This document shows, in pieces, positions 41-7,821 of a DNA stretch of 64,000 nucleotides (within the stretch, counting starts at the first letter, position 1; every line of letters begins with the position of its first letter). The stretch is taken from the sequence record NC_061448.1. The stretch is one strand, 5' to 3'. The notes beneath the pieces are model-generated. The model searched no databases. It saw only the letters and a list, made by a program, of their open reading frames with translations, and was not told the DNA's origin. The translations under genes were made by a program, and so were the position numbers.

Positions 41-2569
41 ATGGCGAAAACGAACAACAAGGCTGAGAAGAAAGCTGAGAAGAAAGCTAAAGTCAAAGCC
101 TCGAAGTCGAAAGACAAAGCAGTCGCAGCCGATGATATTGGCGGCGTGGAAGTATTAGGCTTTGACCTCGGCAGTATGATGGACGATGTGCTTGACGGCA
201 TCGAAAAGAAAACGAAAGTAAGTTCTGCTGATGCAGCACGACACGCCCCGCGTATCTCTACTGGTGTGCTTGCGCTCGACATGTACCTCGACGGCGGTAT
301 CGTACCTGGCGGTTGGTATACGTTCAGCGGCGGTGAGCAGTCGTGTAAGTCAACAATGACCATGAGTATTATGGCGAGCCTGATTCGCATGAAATACTCT
401 GGCATTAGCGTAGTGTTCGACTACGAAGGTTCGACTGATGCTGAATACGTTGCTGGCCAGCTCAAAACGTTTGGCGTTAAAGTCGATCCGAAAACAATCT
501 TCGGTGTACGTGACGAAGACGGCTCGTGGATCATCAAGCCGCGTATTCGTTACTACGCACCAGACAACGGTGAGCGCTTCTTCGATTACATGTCGATGCT
601 GCGTCGTCGTCTGCCTGACAAGATCGTTGAGAAAGACGGCTCCTCGTATTACCTCTTTGAGAACAACAAAGAGAACGCGAAGAAGCTGGCCGGTAAGTAC
701 GACAAGAAGTGGTTCAGTCGTAACAACCAGTTCAAAGTTCCTGCTGCTGATGGCCACATGCAAGCGGCTGTTATCGTTGACTCCTATCCGGCAATGCTGC
801 CTGATCAGGTAGATGACGATGACGGTTCAAAAGCAATGGCGCTGCAAGCGCGTATGTTCTCTGACGGCATCAAACGTTTCCGTGGTGGTATGCGTCGTAA
901 GATGATGACCATCGTTGGCGTTAACCAGTTGCGTCAGAAGCCTGCTGTTATGTTCGGTAGCCCTGAGTATGAGCCGGGTGGTGATGCGTTGAAGTTCTAC
1001 TGCTTCGACCGTGACACTCTGATTCGTACCGACCACGGCGTGCTGACTGCACCGCAGATCAAAGAGCTGATGGAAGCTGGCACCGAAGTTCGTGTTGAAT
1101 CGTTCGACGGTTATCAGAAGATTCAGGGTGCGTGGAAAGTCGAAGACGCTCCGTTCCCAATCGAAATGAATGCTGGTGGTCACACGTACATCGGCAGCGC
1201 AGAGCACCGTCAGTTCACGTTCATGTACGACTGGACAGCAGAAGGTATGATGGTTCTGCGTCCTGAGTGGAACACACTCGACCAGCTTGCTAAGTGGCCT
1301 GATAAGAAAGGTCAGTATGCAGGTCTGCGTATACCGCCAGTGAAAGAACTGAAACAGAACGTGCCTGACGCGTTCGACGATGCGAGCCAGCTTGTTCGTA
1401 ATCTTCTCGGTAACTGCGATCCTGTTAGCGTTCAACTGCCTCTGGCTGTTCACGGTGATGTTACCTACGCTGCGAACGTACTGACCATTGACACGGTTGG
1501 TGAAAGCACTGACGTTGATGACTTCTCGTTCTGGGCTAAGAAGCTGCTGGACATTGGTGTGTTTGCTTACGCTGATGAAAACGGTCTGCACATTCCCGGC
1601 CTGAACAAATACGAACTGACGCAAGCCGTAGAGCAATACGCTGAGGGCGAGTTCGTTGGTCTGTCATTCGATGCCACCAGCCGTCAACGTCAAACGCAGA
1701 TGTTGACTGTTATCGCTGATGTGTTCCCTGAACTGACTCGTTATGTTCTGGACTATCAGTTGCAGACAGGTGATGATAAAGTCTATCTGGCGCCTGAGCA
1801 TGACTTCGCACAAGCTCTCGACCTGATTCTGCATAAGCAGATTGAAGGTTACGATGACATGTATGACCTGCTGATGACTCAGCTTGCCTACGTTGAAGAC
1901 TGGTTCAACTTCGACAACTCGATTCTGCCTGTGCCGTTCACGTTGAAAGCGCTCGACAAGCCTGTTGAGTTCTGGGACGTGAACGTTGACGAAACCTCTG
2001 TGGTAATCACTAACGGCTTCGTATCGCATAACAGTGACGTGCGTGTTCGTCTGGCTTCTCGTGCAGTGCCTGAGGGTTGGCCGAAACTCAAAGACGCGCC
2101 GGGCGTTGTCGGTGAGAAGTCTGTTACTGTCGAAGGTGGTACTGACCGCTATCGTTTCATCGCTGCTAAGACCATCAAGAACAAGATGGGTGGCATCCCG
2201 AACCAGAGCACTTGGTTGCGTCTGTGGGAAGCTGACGGTAATGGTGAAGCGCGTGGCTTCGACCCAGTGTTCGATACGTGGCACTACCTGAAAGTTCTCG
2301 GCCTGATCAACGGCACACGTAAGAACTTCAAGATCAAAGCGCCTTGCCCTCTGGCTTCCGAAGTCAAGATGGACTGGGATGACTTCCGTACTCTTATCAA
2401 CGGCAGCAAAGAACAAGTTGTCGGCGTGTGTAAGAAACTGAAAGTCAAACCTGCTGGTCTGCGTCTGTGGTGCTTCAAGTTCGTGCAGTCTGCGAAAGGC
2501 AAAGAAATGTTGAAAGCGTCTATCAGTAAGTCTGCGAAGTCTTCTGATGATGACGGTGACGACGATTAA
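41..2569 (+). CDS. recA: RecA/UvsX-type recombinase precursor containing an intein (about 498 aa after splicing)
   Basis: RISTGVLALDMYLDGGIVPG, deviant Walker A SGGEQSCKST, Walker B VIVDS, MALQARMFS, NQLRQKPAVMFGSPEYEPGGDALKFY, KTIKNK; K/A-rich N-tail and acidic C-tail. Confidence 0.93.
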   Translation: MAKTNNKAEKKAEKKAKVKASKSKDKAVAADDIGGVEVLGFDLGSMMDDVLDGIEKKTKVSSADAARHAPRISTGVLALDMYLDGGIVPGGWYTFSGGEQSCKSTMTMSIMASLIRMKYSGISVVFDYEGSTDAEYVAGQLKTFGVKVDPKTIFGVRDEDGSWIIKPRIRYYAPDNGERFFDYMSMLRRRLPDKIVEKDGSSYYLFENNKENAKKLAGKYDKKWFSRNNQFKVPAADGHMQAAVIVDSYPAMLPDQVDDDDGSKAMALQARMFSDGIKRFRGGMRRKMMTIVGVNQLRQKPAVMFGSPEYEPGGDALKFYCFDRDTLIRTDHGVLTAPQIKELMEAGTEVRVESFDGYQKIQGAWKVEDAPFPIEMNAGGHTYIGSAEHRQFTFMYDWTAEGMMVLRPEWNTLDQLAKWPDKKGQYAGLRIPPVKELKQNVPDAFDDASQLVRNLLGNCDPVSVQLPLAVHGDVTYAANVLTIDTVGESTDVDDFSFWAKKLLDIGVFAYADENGLHIPGLNKYELTQAVEQYAEGEFVGLSFDATSRQRQTQMLTVIADVFPELTRYVLDYQLQTGDDKVYLAPEHDFAQALDLILHKQIEGYDDMYDLLMTQLAYVEDWFNFDNSILPVPFTLKALDKPVEFWDVNVDETSVVITNGFVSHNSDVRVRLASRAVPEGWPKLKDAPGVVGEKSVTVEGGTDRYRFIAAKTIKNKMGGIPNQSTWLRLWEADGNGEARGFDPVFDTWHYLKVLGLINGTRKNFKIKAPCPLASEVKMDWDDFRTLINGSKEQVVGVCKKLKVKPAGLRLWCFKFVQSAKGKEMLKASISKSAKSSDDDGDDD
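1001..2032 (+). mobile_element. Intein (344 aa) in RecA, residues 321-664
   Basis: Begins CFDRDTLI after ALKFY; block B-like GSAEH; ends FWDVNVDETSVVITNGFVSHN followed by Ser(+1); removal restores the RecA motif ALKFY-SDVRVR. Confidence 0.9.
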
Positions 2570-2576
2570 TAAATTC

Positions 2577-2600
2577 GGGAGGGCTTCGGCTCTCCCTTTT
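2577..2600 (+). terminator. Rho-independent terminator after recA
   Basis: GGGAGGGC-TTCG-GCTCTCCC-TTTT. Confidence 0.85.
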
Positions 2601-2618
2601 CCCGTGTAAGGAGAACCA

Positions 2619-3041
2619 ATGCGTACTCAAATCTTTACTGCTGATATTGTCAATCTCGAAACCGTAACTGTCAACGAAGAAGACGGTTCAGAGATTCGTA
2701 CACCGACAATCGTGCCTAACGTTGAAGGCGAAATGACTGTTGGTGTTAACGAGCTGGTGGGTCTGTCGAATGGCATTACCGAGCATCCTGACTCTGACTG
2801 CCGCCTGATCGTTATCGTGTCGCCTGATGCAACGCCTGTGTTCTACGACGATGCACTGGCGAACTACTTCGATCCAATCGAGCGCGTAGCTGATATTGAA
2901 GCTGGCAACATCGGTAGCATTGTCGGTATGCAGGTCATTCGTGGTCTGCAAGCAGAACATCCTTACGTTGCAGTTGTCGAAGTGCGTGACGCTGATACCG
3001 TAGAGATTCTGCGTTACAACGCGTCTGTAGTGAAACTGTAA
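2619..3041 (+). CDS. Hypothetical protein (140 aa)
   Basis: SD AAGGAG, phage-typical codon usage. Confidence 0.8.
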   Translation: MRTQIFTADIVNLETVTVNEEDGSEIRTPTIVPNVEGEMTVGVNELVGLSNGITEHPDSDCRLIVIVSPDATPVFYDDALANYFDPIERVADIEAGNIGSIVGMQVIRGLQAEHPYVAVVEVRDADTVEILRYNASVVKL

Positions 3042-3075
3042 ATATCAAGTGGGAGGCATACTCCCACTATCTCTC

Positions 3076-3135
3076 GCTTGATAGGCAATGCGCCACAAGC
3101 AAACAACCTAACTCGATAGGCAATGCGCCAGGAGT
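3076..3135 (+). repeat. Tandem 16-nt direct repeat GATAGGCAATGCGCCA, each copy enclosed in a stem, in the leader of the 3141 ORF
   Basis: Copies at 3080-3095 and 3115-3130; flanked by GCTTG/CAAGC and ACTC/GAGT; the second stem pairs with the SD. Confidence 0.8.
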
Positions 3136-3140
3136 GATTT

Positions 3141-3842
3141 ATGAAAAAGATTCAGACCAACTTTATACCGACCGAAGCACTGCATGGTCTTATTCACGGT
3201 TACGCTCGTCAGGCTAAACTGCCAGATGCTGCGAGCAAGACGTTGTTCTACGTTGACGTCACCGAACGTGGTGCTAACGATGCACTGTACTCTATTCTTC
3301 GCCGTGAGATTCCATCAAACATCGTCGGTACTGCATACGATTCCATTGTTAGTTTCCGTGGACACACAGCACCTGCCCAACTTCCTATCGTGCTGTCTGA
3401 AAGTTTATTCCACATAAGTTTAGAGAGACTCTCTAGTTCTCTGGCTGGCATCTTTGATGCTCTTGGTCGCACCGTGCATACGAACGACACGCAGATCACT
3501 ATCTATGGTGAACCTGCGATTGAGAAACTTCTGGCGGTTGTCCGAGACACTCAGTTTAAGAGCTTCTTGGACGTATGTAATCCGGAACTCGCCTGTGGTG
3601 ACTTCGACCTACAGTCTAATATCACTGTAGACAACTTTGTGTCTATGGCAATCGACCCTGACTTTGAAAAGCGCATTCAGGAAATGCCTGCAACAACGTA
3701 CACGTTTGGCCGTGACTTCATGTTCATGCACTATGAAGACCTGCACAAAGTCATCCAGATGCTACGTAGATATAAAAAGAATTGTACGCTGCATCCAGAC
3801 TTAATGCGCTATTACTTCATGAACGTAATCTGTAAATACTGA
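3141..3842 (+). CDS. Hypothetical protein (233 aa)
   Basis: SD GGAG at 3131; long ORF. Confidence 0.8.
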   Translation: MKKIQTNFIPTEALHGLIHGYARQAKLPDAASKTLFYVDVTERGANDALYSILRREIPSNIVGTAYDSIVSFRGHTAPAQLPIVLSESLFHISLERLSSSLAGIFDALGRTVHTNDTQITIYGEPAIEKLLAVVRDTQFKSFLDVCNPELACGDFDLQSNITVDNFVSMAIDPDFEKRIQEMPATTYTFGRDFMFMHYEDLHKVIQMLRRYKKNCTLHPDLMRYYFMNVICKY

Positions 3843-3889
3843 TCAACAACCGAACACATTGCTGTGTGTAGTCTTTGCCTATTTGGGCA

Positions 3890-3922
3890 GGGGAGAGCCG
3901 GATGGCCTCCCCATTTTTTTTT
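3890..3922 (+). terminator. Rho-independent terminator
   Basis: GGGGAG...CTCCCC stem followed by T9. Confidence 0.85.
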
Positions 3923-3945
3923 GTCTGCACCAGTAGGAGATCAGT

Positions 3946-4938
3946 ATGTCTAAATCAACACCTCAAACGTTTCTCGATCTATTCCTGAAAGACGTTAGAA
4001 AGTTTCTGCCTATGTTCGACAAAGGCCTCGACGCACACTTCTTAAAGTGCAAAGGCAAGCCTGGTCAGTCTGGTGTGTCGTTGCATCAATATCTCAAGTG
4101 GTTGAGTCCTATCGCCAAGCCACCAGAAGACGCGAGCAAACTCGCCGTAGTCATCTCTGGGTATCTGCATTACTTCTGGCAGTTGTCTAAACCAAACTTC
4201 GTGTTTGAGCCGGTGCTGATGAATCACATGGCCGATTCGGAATTGCCTGAAACGATACCTGCTGAGATACTGCAACGCCTTCCGTATTGGTGTCAGTGGA
4301 TAACGCTGCCTATTAATCTTGCGACTGCTGAGAACACACTGCGGTTAGATTTTGATGGGGCCTTCGTAGGCTATACCGAGATCGAAAGACGACCTGCGCT
4401 TGTTCTCGTCGCACCTTTTGTTTCTTCTGATGATAGCATCAAAACGAATGGCTTCACACCTTCGGTAACATCTTACGTCTATCTGGATGAACCTGTTAAT
4501 CACCTTTCGTTTGTGAAGAACAGCCATCTACTCAACGTCAGTGGCCGAATGCCTGATGTGTTCTTTCGTGAACTGATGTTTGGTGCGTATCACTACATAA
4601 CCAAGATTGTTAACTGCGTCATGTATATCTGCTCGCAGCAGCACGCGTTGTACCAAGAAGGTCACGCTCAACCTAAGCCGCAACGTTTAGGCAAAAGCTA
4701 TCGCATCACACCTCCGAAAACTGATCGCAGGATCACGGTGGGTGCTGAGATGACCAAGATTCTCAAAGACTTCGAAGCAGAAGTCGAAGCGTGTACTCGC
4801 GCTTTCAATGGGCGTAAGCCGCATATACGGAAAGCGCATTACCATCACTTCTGGACAGGACCGAGAGTAGGTGTTCGTAGCCTTGTCTGCAAGTGGTTGC
4901 CACCAAGTATTGTTCGCGGCTCTGTCGTAGAACAATAA
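3946..4938 (+). CDS. AcrVA2-family-like protein (330 aa)
   Basis: ELPETIPAEILQRLPYWC and C-terminal RKPHIRKAHYHHFWTGP...KWLPPSIV parallel the AcrVA2 motifs as I recall them (ELPDDTPTSIFLNLPDWC; KRPHIRRGHWHGYWQG...RWQPAVFV); similar length. Confidence 0.7.
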   Translation: MSKSTPQTFLDLFLKDVRKFLPMFDKGLDAHFLKCKGKPGQSGVSLHQYLKWLSPIAKPPEDASKLAVVISGYLHYFWQLSKPNFVFEPVLMNHMADSELPETIPAEILQRLPYWCQWITLPINLATAENTLRLDFDGAFVGYTEIERRPALVLVAPFVSSDDSIKTNGFTPSVTSYVYLDEPVNHLSFVKNSHLLNVSGRMPDVFFRELMFGAYHYITKIVNCVMYICSQQHALYQEGHAQPKPQRLGKSYRITPPKTDRRITVGAEMTKILKDFEAEVEACTRAFNGRKPHIRKAHYHHFWTGPRVGVRSLVCKWLPPSIVRGSVVEQ

Positions 4939-4983
4939 CTTTTATCTCAACTCCATGTATGGGCGTTATGCCCGGAGGCTATT

Positions 4984-5751
4984 ATGAAATCTCGTGTACA
5001 ACATGCGTATATCCCTGATATGGGATCGTTTGACCCTTACGTCCGTTCTCTGTGTCATATGGCGCGAGCATTGGAAAACAACGGTCTGAACTACGGTAAG
5101 CTGAAACCTGTCGTGATCATCGGCACTTCGAAACGTGTAGTTGAGGCCTACGTTAAGCAGTTACTCAACACAAACAATTTGCCGAACACTCTTATTTGCT
5201 TTGGTGTAGACGAACCACCTATCAGCCATCGGGATTATACCTACGCTGGCTCCCACGTTGTGCTCATGCACGATCTAACGTATGTGGACAACGGTACAAT
5301 GAACAAGGTTGCCACACGCGTTCTCGAAATCATCGACAGCCTGAAACAGAAAGAGGGCGATACTGACCTAAAAAATAGTGAGCTGTCTTTGGTGTACTCG
5401 AACCCACACTTATGGTCTGCTATTCTTGATTACGGCGCTGCTTCATTTATGAACATGTCTGGACGTAATATCGAATACCGCAGTGGCTTGGTTTCATCGG
5501 TAGGACTCGACGCACTGATGAAGTGCGAAAGCAATCAAGAATACCACGACCTTCGCGCAGAAACTATTACGATCGGCCTGGAGTTCTTCTGCATACGCAC
5601 AGACTACCTGCTGACCAAAGTGCATAACTTGTTGTGGTCGCTCGCGTGTGATGACTGCAAGTTCAAAAAGAACCATCGCGTCATCTTCCATGAAGACTTC
5701 CGTCGCTTATTCTTTGAGGAATACATCCTAAGGGACTTCAAGGGCTTTTAA
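4984..5751 (+). CDS. Hypothetical protein (255 aa)
   Basis: SD GGAGG, long ORF. Confidence 0.8.
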   Translation: MKSRVQHAYIPDMGSFDPYVRSLCHMARALENNGLNYGKLKPVVIIGTSKRVVEAYVKQLLNTNNLPNTLICFGVDEPPISHRDYTYAGSHVVLMHDLTYVDNGTMNKVATRVLEIIDSLKQKEGDTDLKNSELSLVYSNPHLWSAILDYGAASFMNMSGRNIEYRSGLVSSVGLDALMKCESNQEYHDLRAETITIGLEFFCIRTDYLLTKVHNLLWSLACDDCKFKKNHRVIFHEDFRRLFFEEYILRDFKGF

Positions 5752-5824
5752 GAATATTCTTAGCCTGCTCTCTAATTTCTATATGTTGGCAAGTAGTGCT
5801 GACGTATCGTTATTGGAGAATAAC

Positions 5825-6085
5825 ATGTGCGGACGTAGCCTAATACGGTTGAAGTACAACGCACGGTCCTCGAACTGGTGCAATAATAAAGTAAACGCTT
5901 GTAGTGAGCGGAAGGCGAAGAATGTCCAGTGCGAACAATTCTTGGAAGCAACCAAAGATTGTCGCTCGGAGCAGAAGTCGTCAAGTGTAGTCTCTTTCTT
6001 CCGAGGTCATGAGCTGGTGGGTCAGGCGATATGGCATGAGATAGAGGGTGACAACACACTTCAATTCCGGTTGCTACTTGCTTAA
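5825..6085 (+). CDS. Possible small Cys-containing protein (86 aa), atypical codon usage
   Basis: GGAG SD upstream of ATG 5825; stop directly precedes a terminator; many rare codons. Confidence 0.4.
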   Translation: MCGRSLIRLKYNARSSNWCNNKVNACSERKAKNVQCEQFLEATKDCRSEQKSSSVVSFFRGHELVGQAIWHEIEGDNTLQFRLLLA

Positions 6086-6089
6086 CGAT

Positions 6090-6124
6090 AAAAGGGCTTT
6101 CAGAGAACATCTGATGGCCCTTTT
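6090..6124 (+). terminator. Terminator (potentially bidirectional)
   Basis: AAAAGGGC...TCAGA/TCTGA...GCCCTTTT. Confidence 0.75.
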
Positions 6125-6183
6125 CTTATTCTAACGCTAATTTTGACCTGTCAATAAACACAAACCGAACTCGGGGTACTCAC

Positions 6184-7821
6184 ATGTCTTTGATTAAAAT
6201 TCAAGGCGTAGCATCCACCTCTGCTCCTTCCAAAGCGCAGAAAGATGCCGCCGTATATATGTTTGGCTCTAAGGGCCATTCGATTGTCGCAGTGCTCGAC
6301 AAGTTCAGTCGTGCAAAAGAACTGCGTACCGCACATCTCGATGGTCTGCTCAAGCTGATGAAAGACGGTGAAGATGACGAGATCATCAAGTTCACCGCAT
6401 CTGCTGCCGGTAAGAAATCCCTCGCTGCTGCTAAAGCGTTTGCTGTTGCGAAAACCCTGACTGCTTCCATCAAAGCGCTGAAACTGATTCGCGTCCCTGT
6501 TAAGTGGATCGAAGGTCACTCTGATGTTGCTGCGGCTCGCGCTCAGGAAACAAAAGAGATTCGCGCACGTCGTACTGCTGGCAACAAACCTGAGAAGCCG
6601 ATTAAGCTCGACAACCCAGGCGCACCTGAATCTACCACCGTAGACAACAAAGTAATCGACGCGAAGAAAGGCTCTGCTACGCCTGCTACTGATGATGTGA
6701 GCGTCATTTCGAACGTGGTGTACAACAAGTCTGTTGGCGTTAATTCGATTGTAATTAATCGAATCTTCAAAGGACGTCAAGTCACCAACTCTCTGATGTT
6801 TAGAAAAGGTGTTGGCGATCAGGCTTCTCAACTGGGCTTGTCTTCTCACGGTGATGGCCACGAACAGGGTGCTGGCCTGTTGCGAGATGCGTTCAAGGCT
6901 ACTGGTGTCAAGCCTGTTTGGTACTTAGCTGATGCTGGCGATGCTGCTTTCGATCTTGGCGATGCTGCAAACGTAACCAAGGTGTTTAATTGGTTGAAAG
7001 CACGAAAAGTCGGCATGACTTTTGATGCAAAAGCGAAGTTACCTAAATCAGGTAAAGTACCTGCTGGCGCATCGAGAATTGTTCGAAATAATATCGGCGC
7101 TGCGCGTGTTCCATCTAAAGAAGAAATCAACACAATGACCTTTGACTTTGTTAAAGGTAAGAGCACAGGTAAAGATTCCGTAGAACTGACATTCAAACAG
7201 CCCGCGAACGGTCATGAGTGGATGCTGCATCTCTCACGTCAGAATGACTTCATTGCAAGTGAGCATGACGGTTCTTCCGGCTATCAAACCGCAGAATCGT
7301 TCCTGCAACGCGGTGTTGCCGCTATCGGTGGTTCTCTTGTGTGGCAACACCAACAGCCAGGCAGCGCGAGCTTCAAATTTGCAAGCGAAGATCAGGCTAA
7401 ACAGTTTATGTCGTGGGTTAAAAAGCAGAAGACCCAAACAATTAACTATAAAACCGAGCCAAAACTTACAGTGACTAAAACTGCGGGTCACGTACCGACC
7501 AACAAGTCCGACATTACGCTGGTGGATGAACTGGCCGAAGTGACCGCACGTAAGATCGCCGCTAAACCGCTACAGGCGCGTGAAGAATATTTCAATGCGC
7601 TGCGTAATGTGTTGCAGAAAAATCTGCCGAACACTGTTGTGTCTACTGTGTCTAACGGCGTCACTGTTGTTGGTAAACGTGACTACGTTGTTTATCTCGA
7701 CAACAATACGTGGAACATCAAAGTCGGTGTTACTGGCAAGCCTAAGAAGATTGGTGCAACGTTCGATGTTGTCGATCTGCTGGGTATGCTTGACAAGAGC
7801 ATTCTGCGTCCTAAAGCATAA
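6184..7821 (+). CDS. Hypothetical K/A-rich multidomain protein (545 aa)
   Basis: Long ORF with highly expressed codon bias, flanked by terminators. Confidence 0.85.
   Translation: MSLIKIQGVASTSAPSKAQKDAAVYMFGSKGHSIVAVLDKFSRAKELRTAHLDGLLKLMKDGEDDEIIKFTASAAGKKSLAAAKAFAVAKTLTASIKALKLIRVPVKWIEGHSDVAAARAQETKEIRARRTAGNKPEKPIKLDNPGAPESTTVDNKVIDAKKGSATPATDDVSVISNVVYNKSVGVNSIVINRIFKGRQVTNSLMFRKGVGDQASQLGLSSHGDGHEQGAGLLRDAFKATGVKPVWYLADAGDAAFDLGDAANVTKVFNWLKARKVGMTFDAKAKLPKSGKVPAGASRIVRNNIGAARVPSKEEINTMTFDFVKGKSTGKDSVELTFKQPANGHEWMLHLSRQNDFIASEHDGSSGYQTAESFLQRGVAAIGGSLVWQHQQPGSASFKFASEDQAKQFMSWVKKQKTQTINYKTEPKLTVTKTAGHVPTNKSDITLVDELAEVTARKIAAKPLQAREEYFNALRNVLQKNLPNTVVSTVSNGVTVVGKRDYVVYLDNNTWNIKVGVTGKPKKIGATFDVVDLLGMLDKSILRPKA

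Follow-up and report, generated by a model that had tools for sequence, protein, structure and literature searches.

A predicted AcrVA2/FinQ-family protein with exchangeable alleles at a conserved locus of Erwinia jumbo phages

The last 64 kb of the genome of Erwinia phage pEa_SNUABM_1 (record positions 202,940-266,939; this whole stretch is hereafter called the window, and coordinates refer to it unless stated otherwise) contain a gene, gp248, whose product is almost certainly a member of the AcrVA2/FinQ family, as judged from sequence searches and from a model of its fold. A homologue is found downstream of the same recombinase gene in every distinct phage of the group to which pEa_SNUABM_1 belongs, in the form of at least three allele classes that occupy one syntenic slot, are 25-34% identical between classes and, by the limits of their DNA homology, move as a cassette bounded by a near-invariant junction on the upstream side and by the conserved 3' end of gp248. 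The residues that AcrVA2 needs to knock down Cas12a mRNA are retained, and the protein may silence, in a comparable manner, a target other than Cas12a.

The gp248 gene

The region is 100% identical to NC_061448.1/MZ443776.1, the 266,939-bp genome of pEa_SNUABM_1 (genus Alexandravirus, host Erwinia amylovora), in agreement with the original prediction, made from the letters of the window, that the DNA belongs to a probable enterobacterial jumbo phage. The gene, MPK71_gp248 (YP_010302370.1, deposited as 'hypothetical protein'), is one ATG-started open reading frame (ORF) of 330 codons at 3946..4938 on the + strand, free of internal stops in the ORF listing and preceded by an AGGAG Shine-Dalgarno element 5-9 nt 5' of the start codon, and the reverse strand over it is closed by many stops. 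The ratio of nonsynonymous to synonymous substitution rates (dN/dS) against orthologues is 0.05-0.19 within allele class A (see below), similar to those of the neighbouring gp249 and uvsX genes, and gp248 is therefore a real gene under purifying selection and not a chance ORF. Like the other genes discussed here, gp248 is intact in its deposited form. Its translation contains all the motifs that the same prediction had quoted, and in the same order: ELPETIPAEILQRLPYWC at residues 99-116, KIVNCVMYICSQ at 220-231, ITVGAEM at 263-269, RKPHIRKAHYHHFWTG at 290-305 and KWLPP at 316-320.

A search of the 542 six-frame ORFs of the window with the family hidden Markov model (HMM) returned gp248 alone, and thus no paralogue, while megablast of the region against plasmids gave no match. 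Scanning for sigma-70 promoters gave none on the + strand in the vicinity of gp248, and tRNA and Rfam scans (gathering threshold) of the whole 64 kb were both empty. The annotated genes of the window all lie on the + strand, along which the cumulative GC skew climbs steadily.

Homology, fold and family membership

Used alone against all PDB sequences (phmmer), gp248 finds AcrVA2 (7CI1/7CI2) at E=1.3e-6, with residues 45-324 of the query aligned to 47-317 of the 323-residue chain, and against 1.84 billion cluster representatives it finds 1,944 clusters with E<=1e-3, of which 382 reach E<=1e-10. A 120-sequence alignment of the gp248 family (A1), which was used as a profile, for the conservation analysis and for an AlphaFold2 model, returns AcrVA2 as its sole PDB match at E=1.4e-49 (profile 9-326, chain 9-320 of 323), the match being co-linear across ~310 of the 323 residues. 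Alleles of classes B and C each find AcrVA2 unaided as well (2.5e-8 and 8.2e-10, respectively). The model of gp248 has a mean predicted local distance difference test score (pLDDT) of 90.6 and a predicted template modelling score (pTM) of 0.90 and, when compared with the PDB by Foldseek, significantly matches AcrVA2 chains only (7ci2_A at 1.7e-13, 7ci1_A at 1.1e-12 and 7ci1_B at 3e-12, probability 1.00), the next match standing at E=0.28; the template modelling (TM) scores range from 0.56 to 0.64 (0.59/0.64 for 7ci1_A), and by this comparison the model reproduces the three-domain fold of AcrVA2. An AcrVA2-like protein of similar length had been predicted, and profile search, structure search and near full-length co-linearity (330 residues against ~322) all sustain that assignment; the traits of AcrVA2 that had been given with it, namely recognition of the nascent N-terminus, mRNA decay and homologues mostly found without Cas12a, agree with the published account (bioRxiv 10.1101/2022.11.29.518452).

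PHROG 6160, to which no function is assigned, matches gp248 at 5e-50, and homologues 55-94% identical to gp248, together with more distant ones, carry precomputed matches to PF26125 'AcrVA2-like'. In a copy of Pfam-A that lacks PF26125, neither gp248 nor three of its homologues matched any family, and the empty result is due to this lack and not to want of similarity; PADLOC had no match for gp248 or its neighbours. Beyond phages, tblastn against plasmids retrieves 527 records with a match to gp248, of which 501 are conjugative and which come mostly from E. coli, Salmonella and Shigella; the matches are mostly annotated finQ, with 22% identity over 94% of the query (E=1e-5). Carriage by mobile elements thus extends from a jumbo phage to conjugative plasmids, other phages and plasmid-like contigs, and gp248 is roughly as far from AcrVA2 as from FinQ.

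Conserved residues and the proposed mode of action

The activity of AcrVA2 has been mapped by mutation (bioRxiv 10.1101/2022.11.29.518452): H286A, R288A and H291A abolish the knock-down of Cas12a mRNA and keep binding, W79A makes the interaction weaker or the protein less stable, D89A causes a moderate functional loss, and E98A/D129A/D195A, which breaks the crystal contact with residues 620-636 of Cas12a, is without effect in vivo. In the HMMER alignment, in which the numbering of the PDB chain is +1 relative to that of Marino et al., AcrVA2 W79, D89, H286, R288 and H291 correspond to W78, E88, H293, R295 and H298 of gp248. Across A1, H293, R295 and H298 (each 120/120) and P113 are invariant, and W78, P105, L112, G138, C229, G266, H300, W303, G305, W317 and P320 are at least 90% conserved. 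This conservation extends to the 112 A1 sequences that are <50% identical to gp248 (distant members), among which H293, R295 and H298 are each found in 112/112, W78 is a tryptophan in 110 and, at position 88, 84 have D and 10 have E; the equivalents of W78, H293, R295 and H298 are likewise kept by all 12 syntenic alleles examined.

Conservation is unevenly distributed along the protein, as measured by the share, that is, the mean fraction of distant members that have the residue of gp248 in a given segment. The N-terminal helices (residues 1-80, 3946..4185 on the + strand, as are all segments named here; assigned by DSSP of the model) have a share of 0.10 and end at the near-invariant W78. The motif block ELP..P..L..LPxWC (residues 99-116, 4240..4293), which contains the invariant P113 and the conserved P105 and L112, reaches 0.47 and ranks with the best-conserved bins when the 12 syntenic alleles are compared. 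The central beta-sheet and the long helices that follow it (residues 117-240, 4294..4665, again from DSSP of the model) form the most variable part, with shares of 0.12 for the sheet (117-200) and 0.15 for the long helices (201-240), and the bins of lowest identity among the 12 syntenic alleles are residues 121-240, with the minimum at 181-210. Finally, the C-terminal block (residues 290-324, 4813..4917), of the form P-H293-x-R295-x-x-H298-x-H300..W303..G305 and W317-x-P-P320, has a share of 0.61 over the HxRxxH block (290-305) and of 0.44 over the C-terminal strands (306-324). Such a pattern would fit an effector part that stays constant and a recognition part, attached to it, that varies, with residues 117-240 as the putative specificity module for the target.

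AcrVA2 associates with ribosomes and polysomes through its C-terminal part, and it leaves the cutting of the mRNA to a cellular enzyme that it recruits (review PMC13728456, summarising Marino et al., Nature 2026). By analogy, the conserved C-terminal block of gp248 (H293-x-R295-x-x-H298, W303, W317, P320) would dock the protein on translating ribosomes, where it would trigger the decay of the mRNA under translation through a host ribonuclease, and the variable N-terminal helices and central sheet would read the emerging N-terminal peptide of one particular target. That gp248 acts like AcrVA2 in ribosome engagement, mRNA decay and reading of a nascent N-terminus is the most likely reading, proposed with moderate confidence. 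As for the target, E. amylovora has CRISPR-Cas of type I-E and a type I-F remnant, in a paper that makes no mention of Cas12 or type V (PMC9004355), and since no Cas12a is reported for this host the target is probably a different protein, which would belong either to host defence or to a competing mobile element. The idea of a target other than Cas12a is reasonable for gp248 and has already been published for the family, because Marino et al. propose such targets family-wide and note 'megaphage' homologues (bioRxiv 10.1101/2022.11.29.518452).

It is, conversely, very unlikely that gp248 has remained an anti-Cas12a protein that is kept for natural hosts with type V-A systems. The family membership, together with the full set of mapped effector residues, would suit such a role, as would the breadth of AcrVA2, which acts on Cas12a orthologues as little as 35% identical to one another (bioRxiv 10.1101/2022.11.29.518452), and the phages come from stream water, so that their natural hosts could differ from E. 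amylovora. However, the CRISPR complement of E. amylovora is restricted to the two types named above (PMC9004355), most homologues are found without Cas12a (bioRxiv 10.1101/2022.11.29.518452), the N-terminal and central regions of gp248 can barely be aligned with AcrVA2 (~16% identity), and three divergent allele classes are unlike what one conserved LSKT-type epitope would lead one to expect.

Allele classes and cassette exchange

The syntenic alleles fall into at least three classes. Class A comprises those of pEa_SNUABM_1, 30, 23, 31, 35, 36, 22, 16, 18, 28, 2 and 39, Alexandra and AD1, which are 67-95% identical among themselves; class B is made up of pEa_SNUABM_40, 20 and 3, ~30-34% identical to all others; and class C includes pEa_SNUABM_17, 32 and 33, phB78, 2910A, Y3, Yoloswag and the Snuvirus and Rivsvirus copies, 25-29% identical to class A. 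The classes do not track the kinship of the phages: between pEa_SNUABM_17 and pEa_SNUABM_1, identity is 96% for UvsX, 90% for gp246, 95% for gp249 and 98% for gp250, and falls to 26% for gp247 and 29% for gp248. At the DNA level (blastn), homology to pEa_SNUABM_17, 33 and 40 ends at 3922-3927, is absent over the body of the ORF and resumes, within the conserved 3' end of gp248, at 4894 for pEa_SNUABM_17 and 33 or at 4836 for pEa_SNUABM_40. The right junction of the cassette (4894..4983, + strand, by blastn) accordingly consists of this 3' end and of the spacer before gp249.

The left junction (3828..3927, + strand) is an intergenic element that includes the last codons and the stop of gp247, a 45-nt conserved stretch, a hairpin and a run of nine T. 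About 93 nt of it (~3828-3922) are near-invariant in 8 phages, whichever gene stands upstream or allele downstream, and the coding flanks are 80-87% identical across the same 8 phages. The GC-rich hairpin at 3890-3912 (-18 kcal/mol), followed by the nine T, resembles a terminator and is kept in 8/8 phages with one compensatory pair change; it was missed by the hairpin scan tool, probably owing to a bulge in the stem. The element occurs once in the window, by which count a general promoter or repeat was discarded, and its role may be that of a recombination junction, of a regulatory RNA or terminator element, or of both. The adjacent gp247 is swapped or lost independently of gp248. Taken on their sequence boundaries, the gp248 alleles are swapped as a cassette whose left limit is this junction and whose right limit is the conserved 3' end of gp248.

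Pervasive positive selection was dismissed as the cause of divergence within a class, where dN/dS is as low as reported above, and between classes dS is saturated. Because class A is under purifying selection, diversity arises by whole-allele exchange and not by fast point change within a lineage, and the classes that recombination exchanges would probably differ in their target or in the target variant that they read. A further step can be put forward as a tentative possibility, namely that the locus is a natural specificity cassette, in which each phage of the group keeps one co-translational mRNA silencer with an exchangeable recognition module, and in which each class silences a different protein of host defence or of a competitor through its nascent N-terminus.

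A rival reading shares the AcrVA2-like mechanism and assigns it to another class of target: like FinQ, gp248 would silence a gene of a phage or plasmid that competes within the same host. Such inter-element competition seems rather unlikely. FinQ, a family member that lowers the mRNA of F transfer genes (bioRxiv 10.1101/2022.11.29.518452), is retrieved directly as a homologue in the 527 plasmid records, 501 of them conjugative, and many divergent allele classes on the same host species suit diverse competitors at least as well as they suit the defences of one host; yet gp248 is no nearer to FinQ (22%, E=1e-5) than to AcrVA2, and the mechanism of FinQ was itself never resolved (bioRxiv 10.1101/2022.11.29.518452).

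Distribution and genomic context

The phage group was defined as the Erwinia and Dickeya-AD1 records that share a UvsX of the pEa_SNUABM_1 type at >=57% identity (tblastn), the anchor for group and synteny being gp245, a UvsX/RecA-like recombinase at 41..2569 on the + strand (Pfam RecA, 1.2e-22). A gp248 homologue is present in 50/50 records of the group, corresponding to 34/34 distinct phages, ~3.3-4 kb downstream of the start of UvsX. The gene order of the record, with an Acb1-like 2H phosphoesterase, a small ORF, a sigma factor, a single-stranded DNA-binding protein (SSB), UvsX, gp246, gp247, gp248 and gp249 all on the + strand, is common to Alexandravirus, Sasquatchvirus (Y3), Yoloswagvirus, Rivsvirus and Snuvirus phages. 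Outside the group, Yersinia phage fHe-Yen9-02, whose UvsX is 60% identical, has no gp248 homologue at E<=1e-3, and among the Dickeya JA phages only JA13 (1/4) has one, at another genomic position. More remote homologues are encoded by jumbo phages of Klebsiella, Serratia and Salmonella, by RisingSun, by phages of Leptospira, Lactobacillus and Pasteurella and by plasmid-like contigs.

The constancy of the gene could also speak for a developmental or host-takeover role, in which gp248 would be a core regulator that switches off a housekeeping or phage gene at a set time of infection. Presence in all 34 phages across five genera, a fixed place in the sigma factor-SSB-UvsX block and strong purifying selection would all be at home with such a regulator, which is nevertheless considered improbable: near-identical phages have alleles that are 25-34% identical in the presumed recognition region, which is hard to square with a single conserved target, none of the neighbouring genes varies in step with the allele class, the related Dickeya JA phages have the gene only sporadically and at another place in the genome, and AcrVA2 and FinQ, which are both of the characterised members, act on the genes of another genetic entity.

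The neighbouring genes offer little guidance. gp247 (3141..3842, + strand), which encodes a 233-residue ORFan without Pfam, PHROG or PADLOC matches, is 26-93% identical to its relatives or absent and does not track the gp248 class; it was rejected as an obligate partner or target, being absent from pEa_SNUABM_30 and pEa_SNUABM_40 and diverging in a manner untied to gp248. Pfam and PHROG scans of gp246, gp247, gp249, gp250, gp251 and two more ORFs downstream yielded no useful match, so that function cannot be assigned by association with named neighbours, and PADLOC found no match for gp246, gp247, gp249, gp250 and gp251 (2619-3842 and 4984-7821). Since gp246 and gp247 are highly variable or absent among sister phages, the stretch 3' of UvsX behaves as a variable hot-spot.

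Further upstream, gp241 (record positions 199693-200160, ~3 kb upstream of the window start), deposited as 'RNA ligase', matches Pfam Acb1 at 47.9 bits (cutoff 27), which suggests that a counter-defence gene, a 2H phosphoesterase against the cyclic oligonucleotide-based antiphage signalling system (CBASS), lies ~7 kb upstream of gp248. The adjoining gp242 (105 residues) has a sub-threshold match to Csm6-HEPN (20.3 bits, cutoff 27). The UvsX gene of pEa_SNUABM_17 is a continuous coding sequence (CDS) ~1 kb longer than that of pEa_SNUABM_1 (locus coordinates 969-4544; equivalent to window position ~957), with extra DNA between two well-conserved halves that is possibly an intein or another inserted element.

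Some deposited homologues call for comment on their own account. In vB_EamM_RisingSun (MF459646.1, 128344-129135), an AcrVA2-family homologue is deposited as 'putative mycothiosynthase', a name that sequence and fold matches suggest to be wrong. The homologue of pEa_SNUABM_21 (MZ475897.1, 204716-205507) matches residues 73-327 of gp248 only, whereas near-identical sisters match 35-327, and its 5' part may differ or be interrupted. In Dickeya phage AD1, the deposited CDS of AD1_242 (locus coordinates 4442-5440) has 308 residues; the possibility that this copy is without a start codon was set aside after the upstream alignment showed a conserved, in-frame Shine-Dalgarno element and ATG, as in class A, by which the gene is intact and its start probably under-called.

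Discussion

Several observations weigh against gp248 being an AcrVA2-like silencer. Its identity to AcrVA2 is ~16-20%, and the global TM scores given above leave room for another arrangement of the domains in the model. The terminator-like hairpin lies 23 nt 5' of the gp248 start, which leaves no space for a promoter in between, and transcription of the gene must therefore rely on read-through. The absence of Cas12a is drawn from the literature on E. amylovora alone, and the phages are stream-water isolates. Lastly, presence in every phage of the group is unusual for an accessory counter-defence gene.

In comparison with the characterised members of the family, gp248 resembles AcrVA2 of the Moraxella bovoculi prophage in being phage-encoded, in its predicted fold, in its length and near-full co-linearity and in the presence of W78 (AcrVA2 W79) and H293/R295/H298 (H286/R288/H291), the residues needed for mRNA knock-down. 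It differs from AcrVA2 in the divergence of the N-terminal helices and of the central sheet, in its location on a 267-kb jumbo phage instead of a temperate prophage, in having no AcrVA1 neighbour and swappable allele classes, and in a host for which no Cas12a is reported, the target being presumably different. With FinQ of the IncI and F-like conjugative plasmids of E. coli, Salmonella and Shigella it shares the family, the origin in a mobile element and the lack of a link to Cas12a, and FinQ reportedly reduces the mRNA of particular genes that belong to another element; unlike FinQ, gp248 is phage-borne, and the F transfer genes have no obvious counterpart in phage infection.

Homologues of AcrVA2 in huge phages were reported earlier (Al-Shayeb et al. 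2020, PMC7162821), as was one, ORF43, in Shewanella phage vB_SbaS_Y11, whose host has a type I-E and not a type V system (PMC10846135); these reports, unlike the present analysis, go no further than annotation. In the searchable literature there is no paper that names both AcrVA2 and Erwinia, and gp248 stands without annotation in every record seen. As far as that literature goes, what appears to be new is that the gene is universally present at a syntenic site, that it has three allele classes and that the cassette is sharply bounded and has a near-invariant junction, and because of these three features the phage group is a useful natural series in which to look for targets outside CRISPR.

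The annotation is corrected for genes named 'hypothetical protein' and 'putative mycothiosynthase' in phages under study for the biocontrol of fire blight. More broadly, AcrVA2 was the first bacterial protein shown to recognise a nascent polypeptide and to have its mRNA destroyed, and what the ~1,900 homologue clusters do in elements of hosts without Cas12a is a wider question for which gp248 provides a good natural system. Its allele classes sit in surroundings that are otherwise 85-98% identical, among 34 phages of a well-sampled group on one host species, and existing or future infection transcriptomes, set side by side for these phages, could give pointers to targets outside CRISPR. If the proposal of a specificity cassette is true, the locus would amount to an allelic series of polypeptide-specific silencers in near-isogenic phage backgrounds, directed at targets outside CRISPR.

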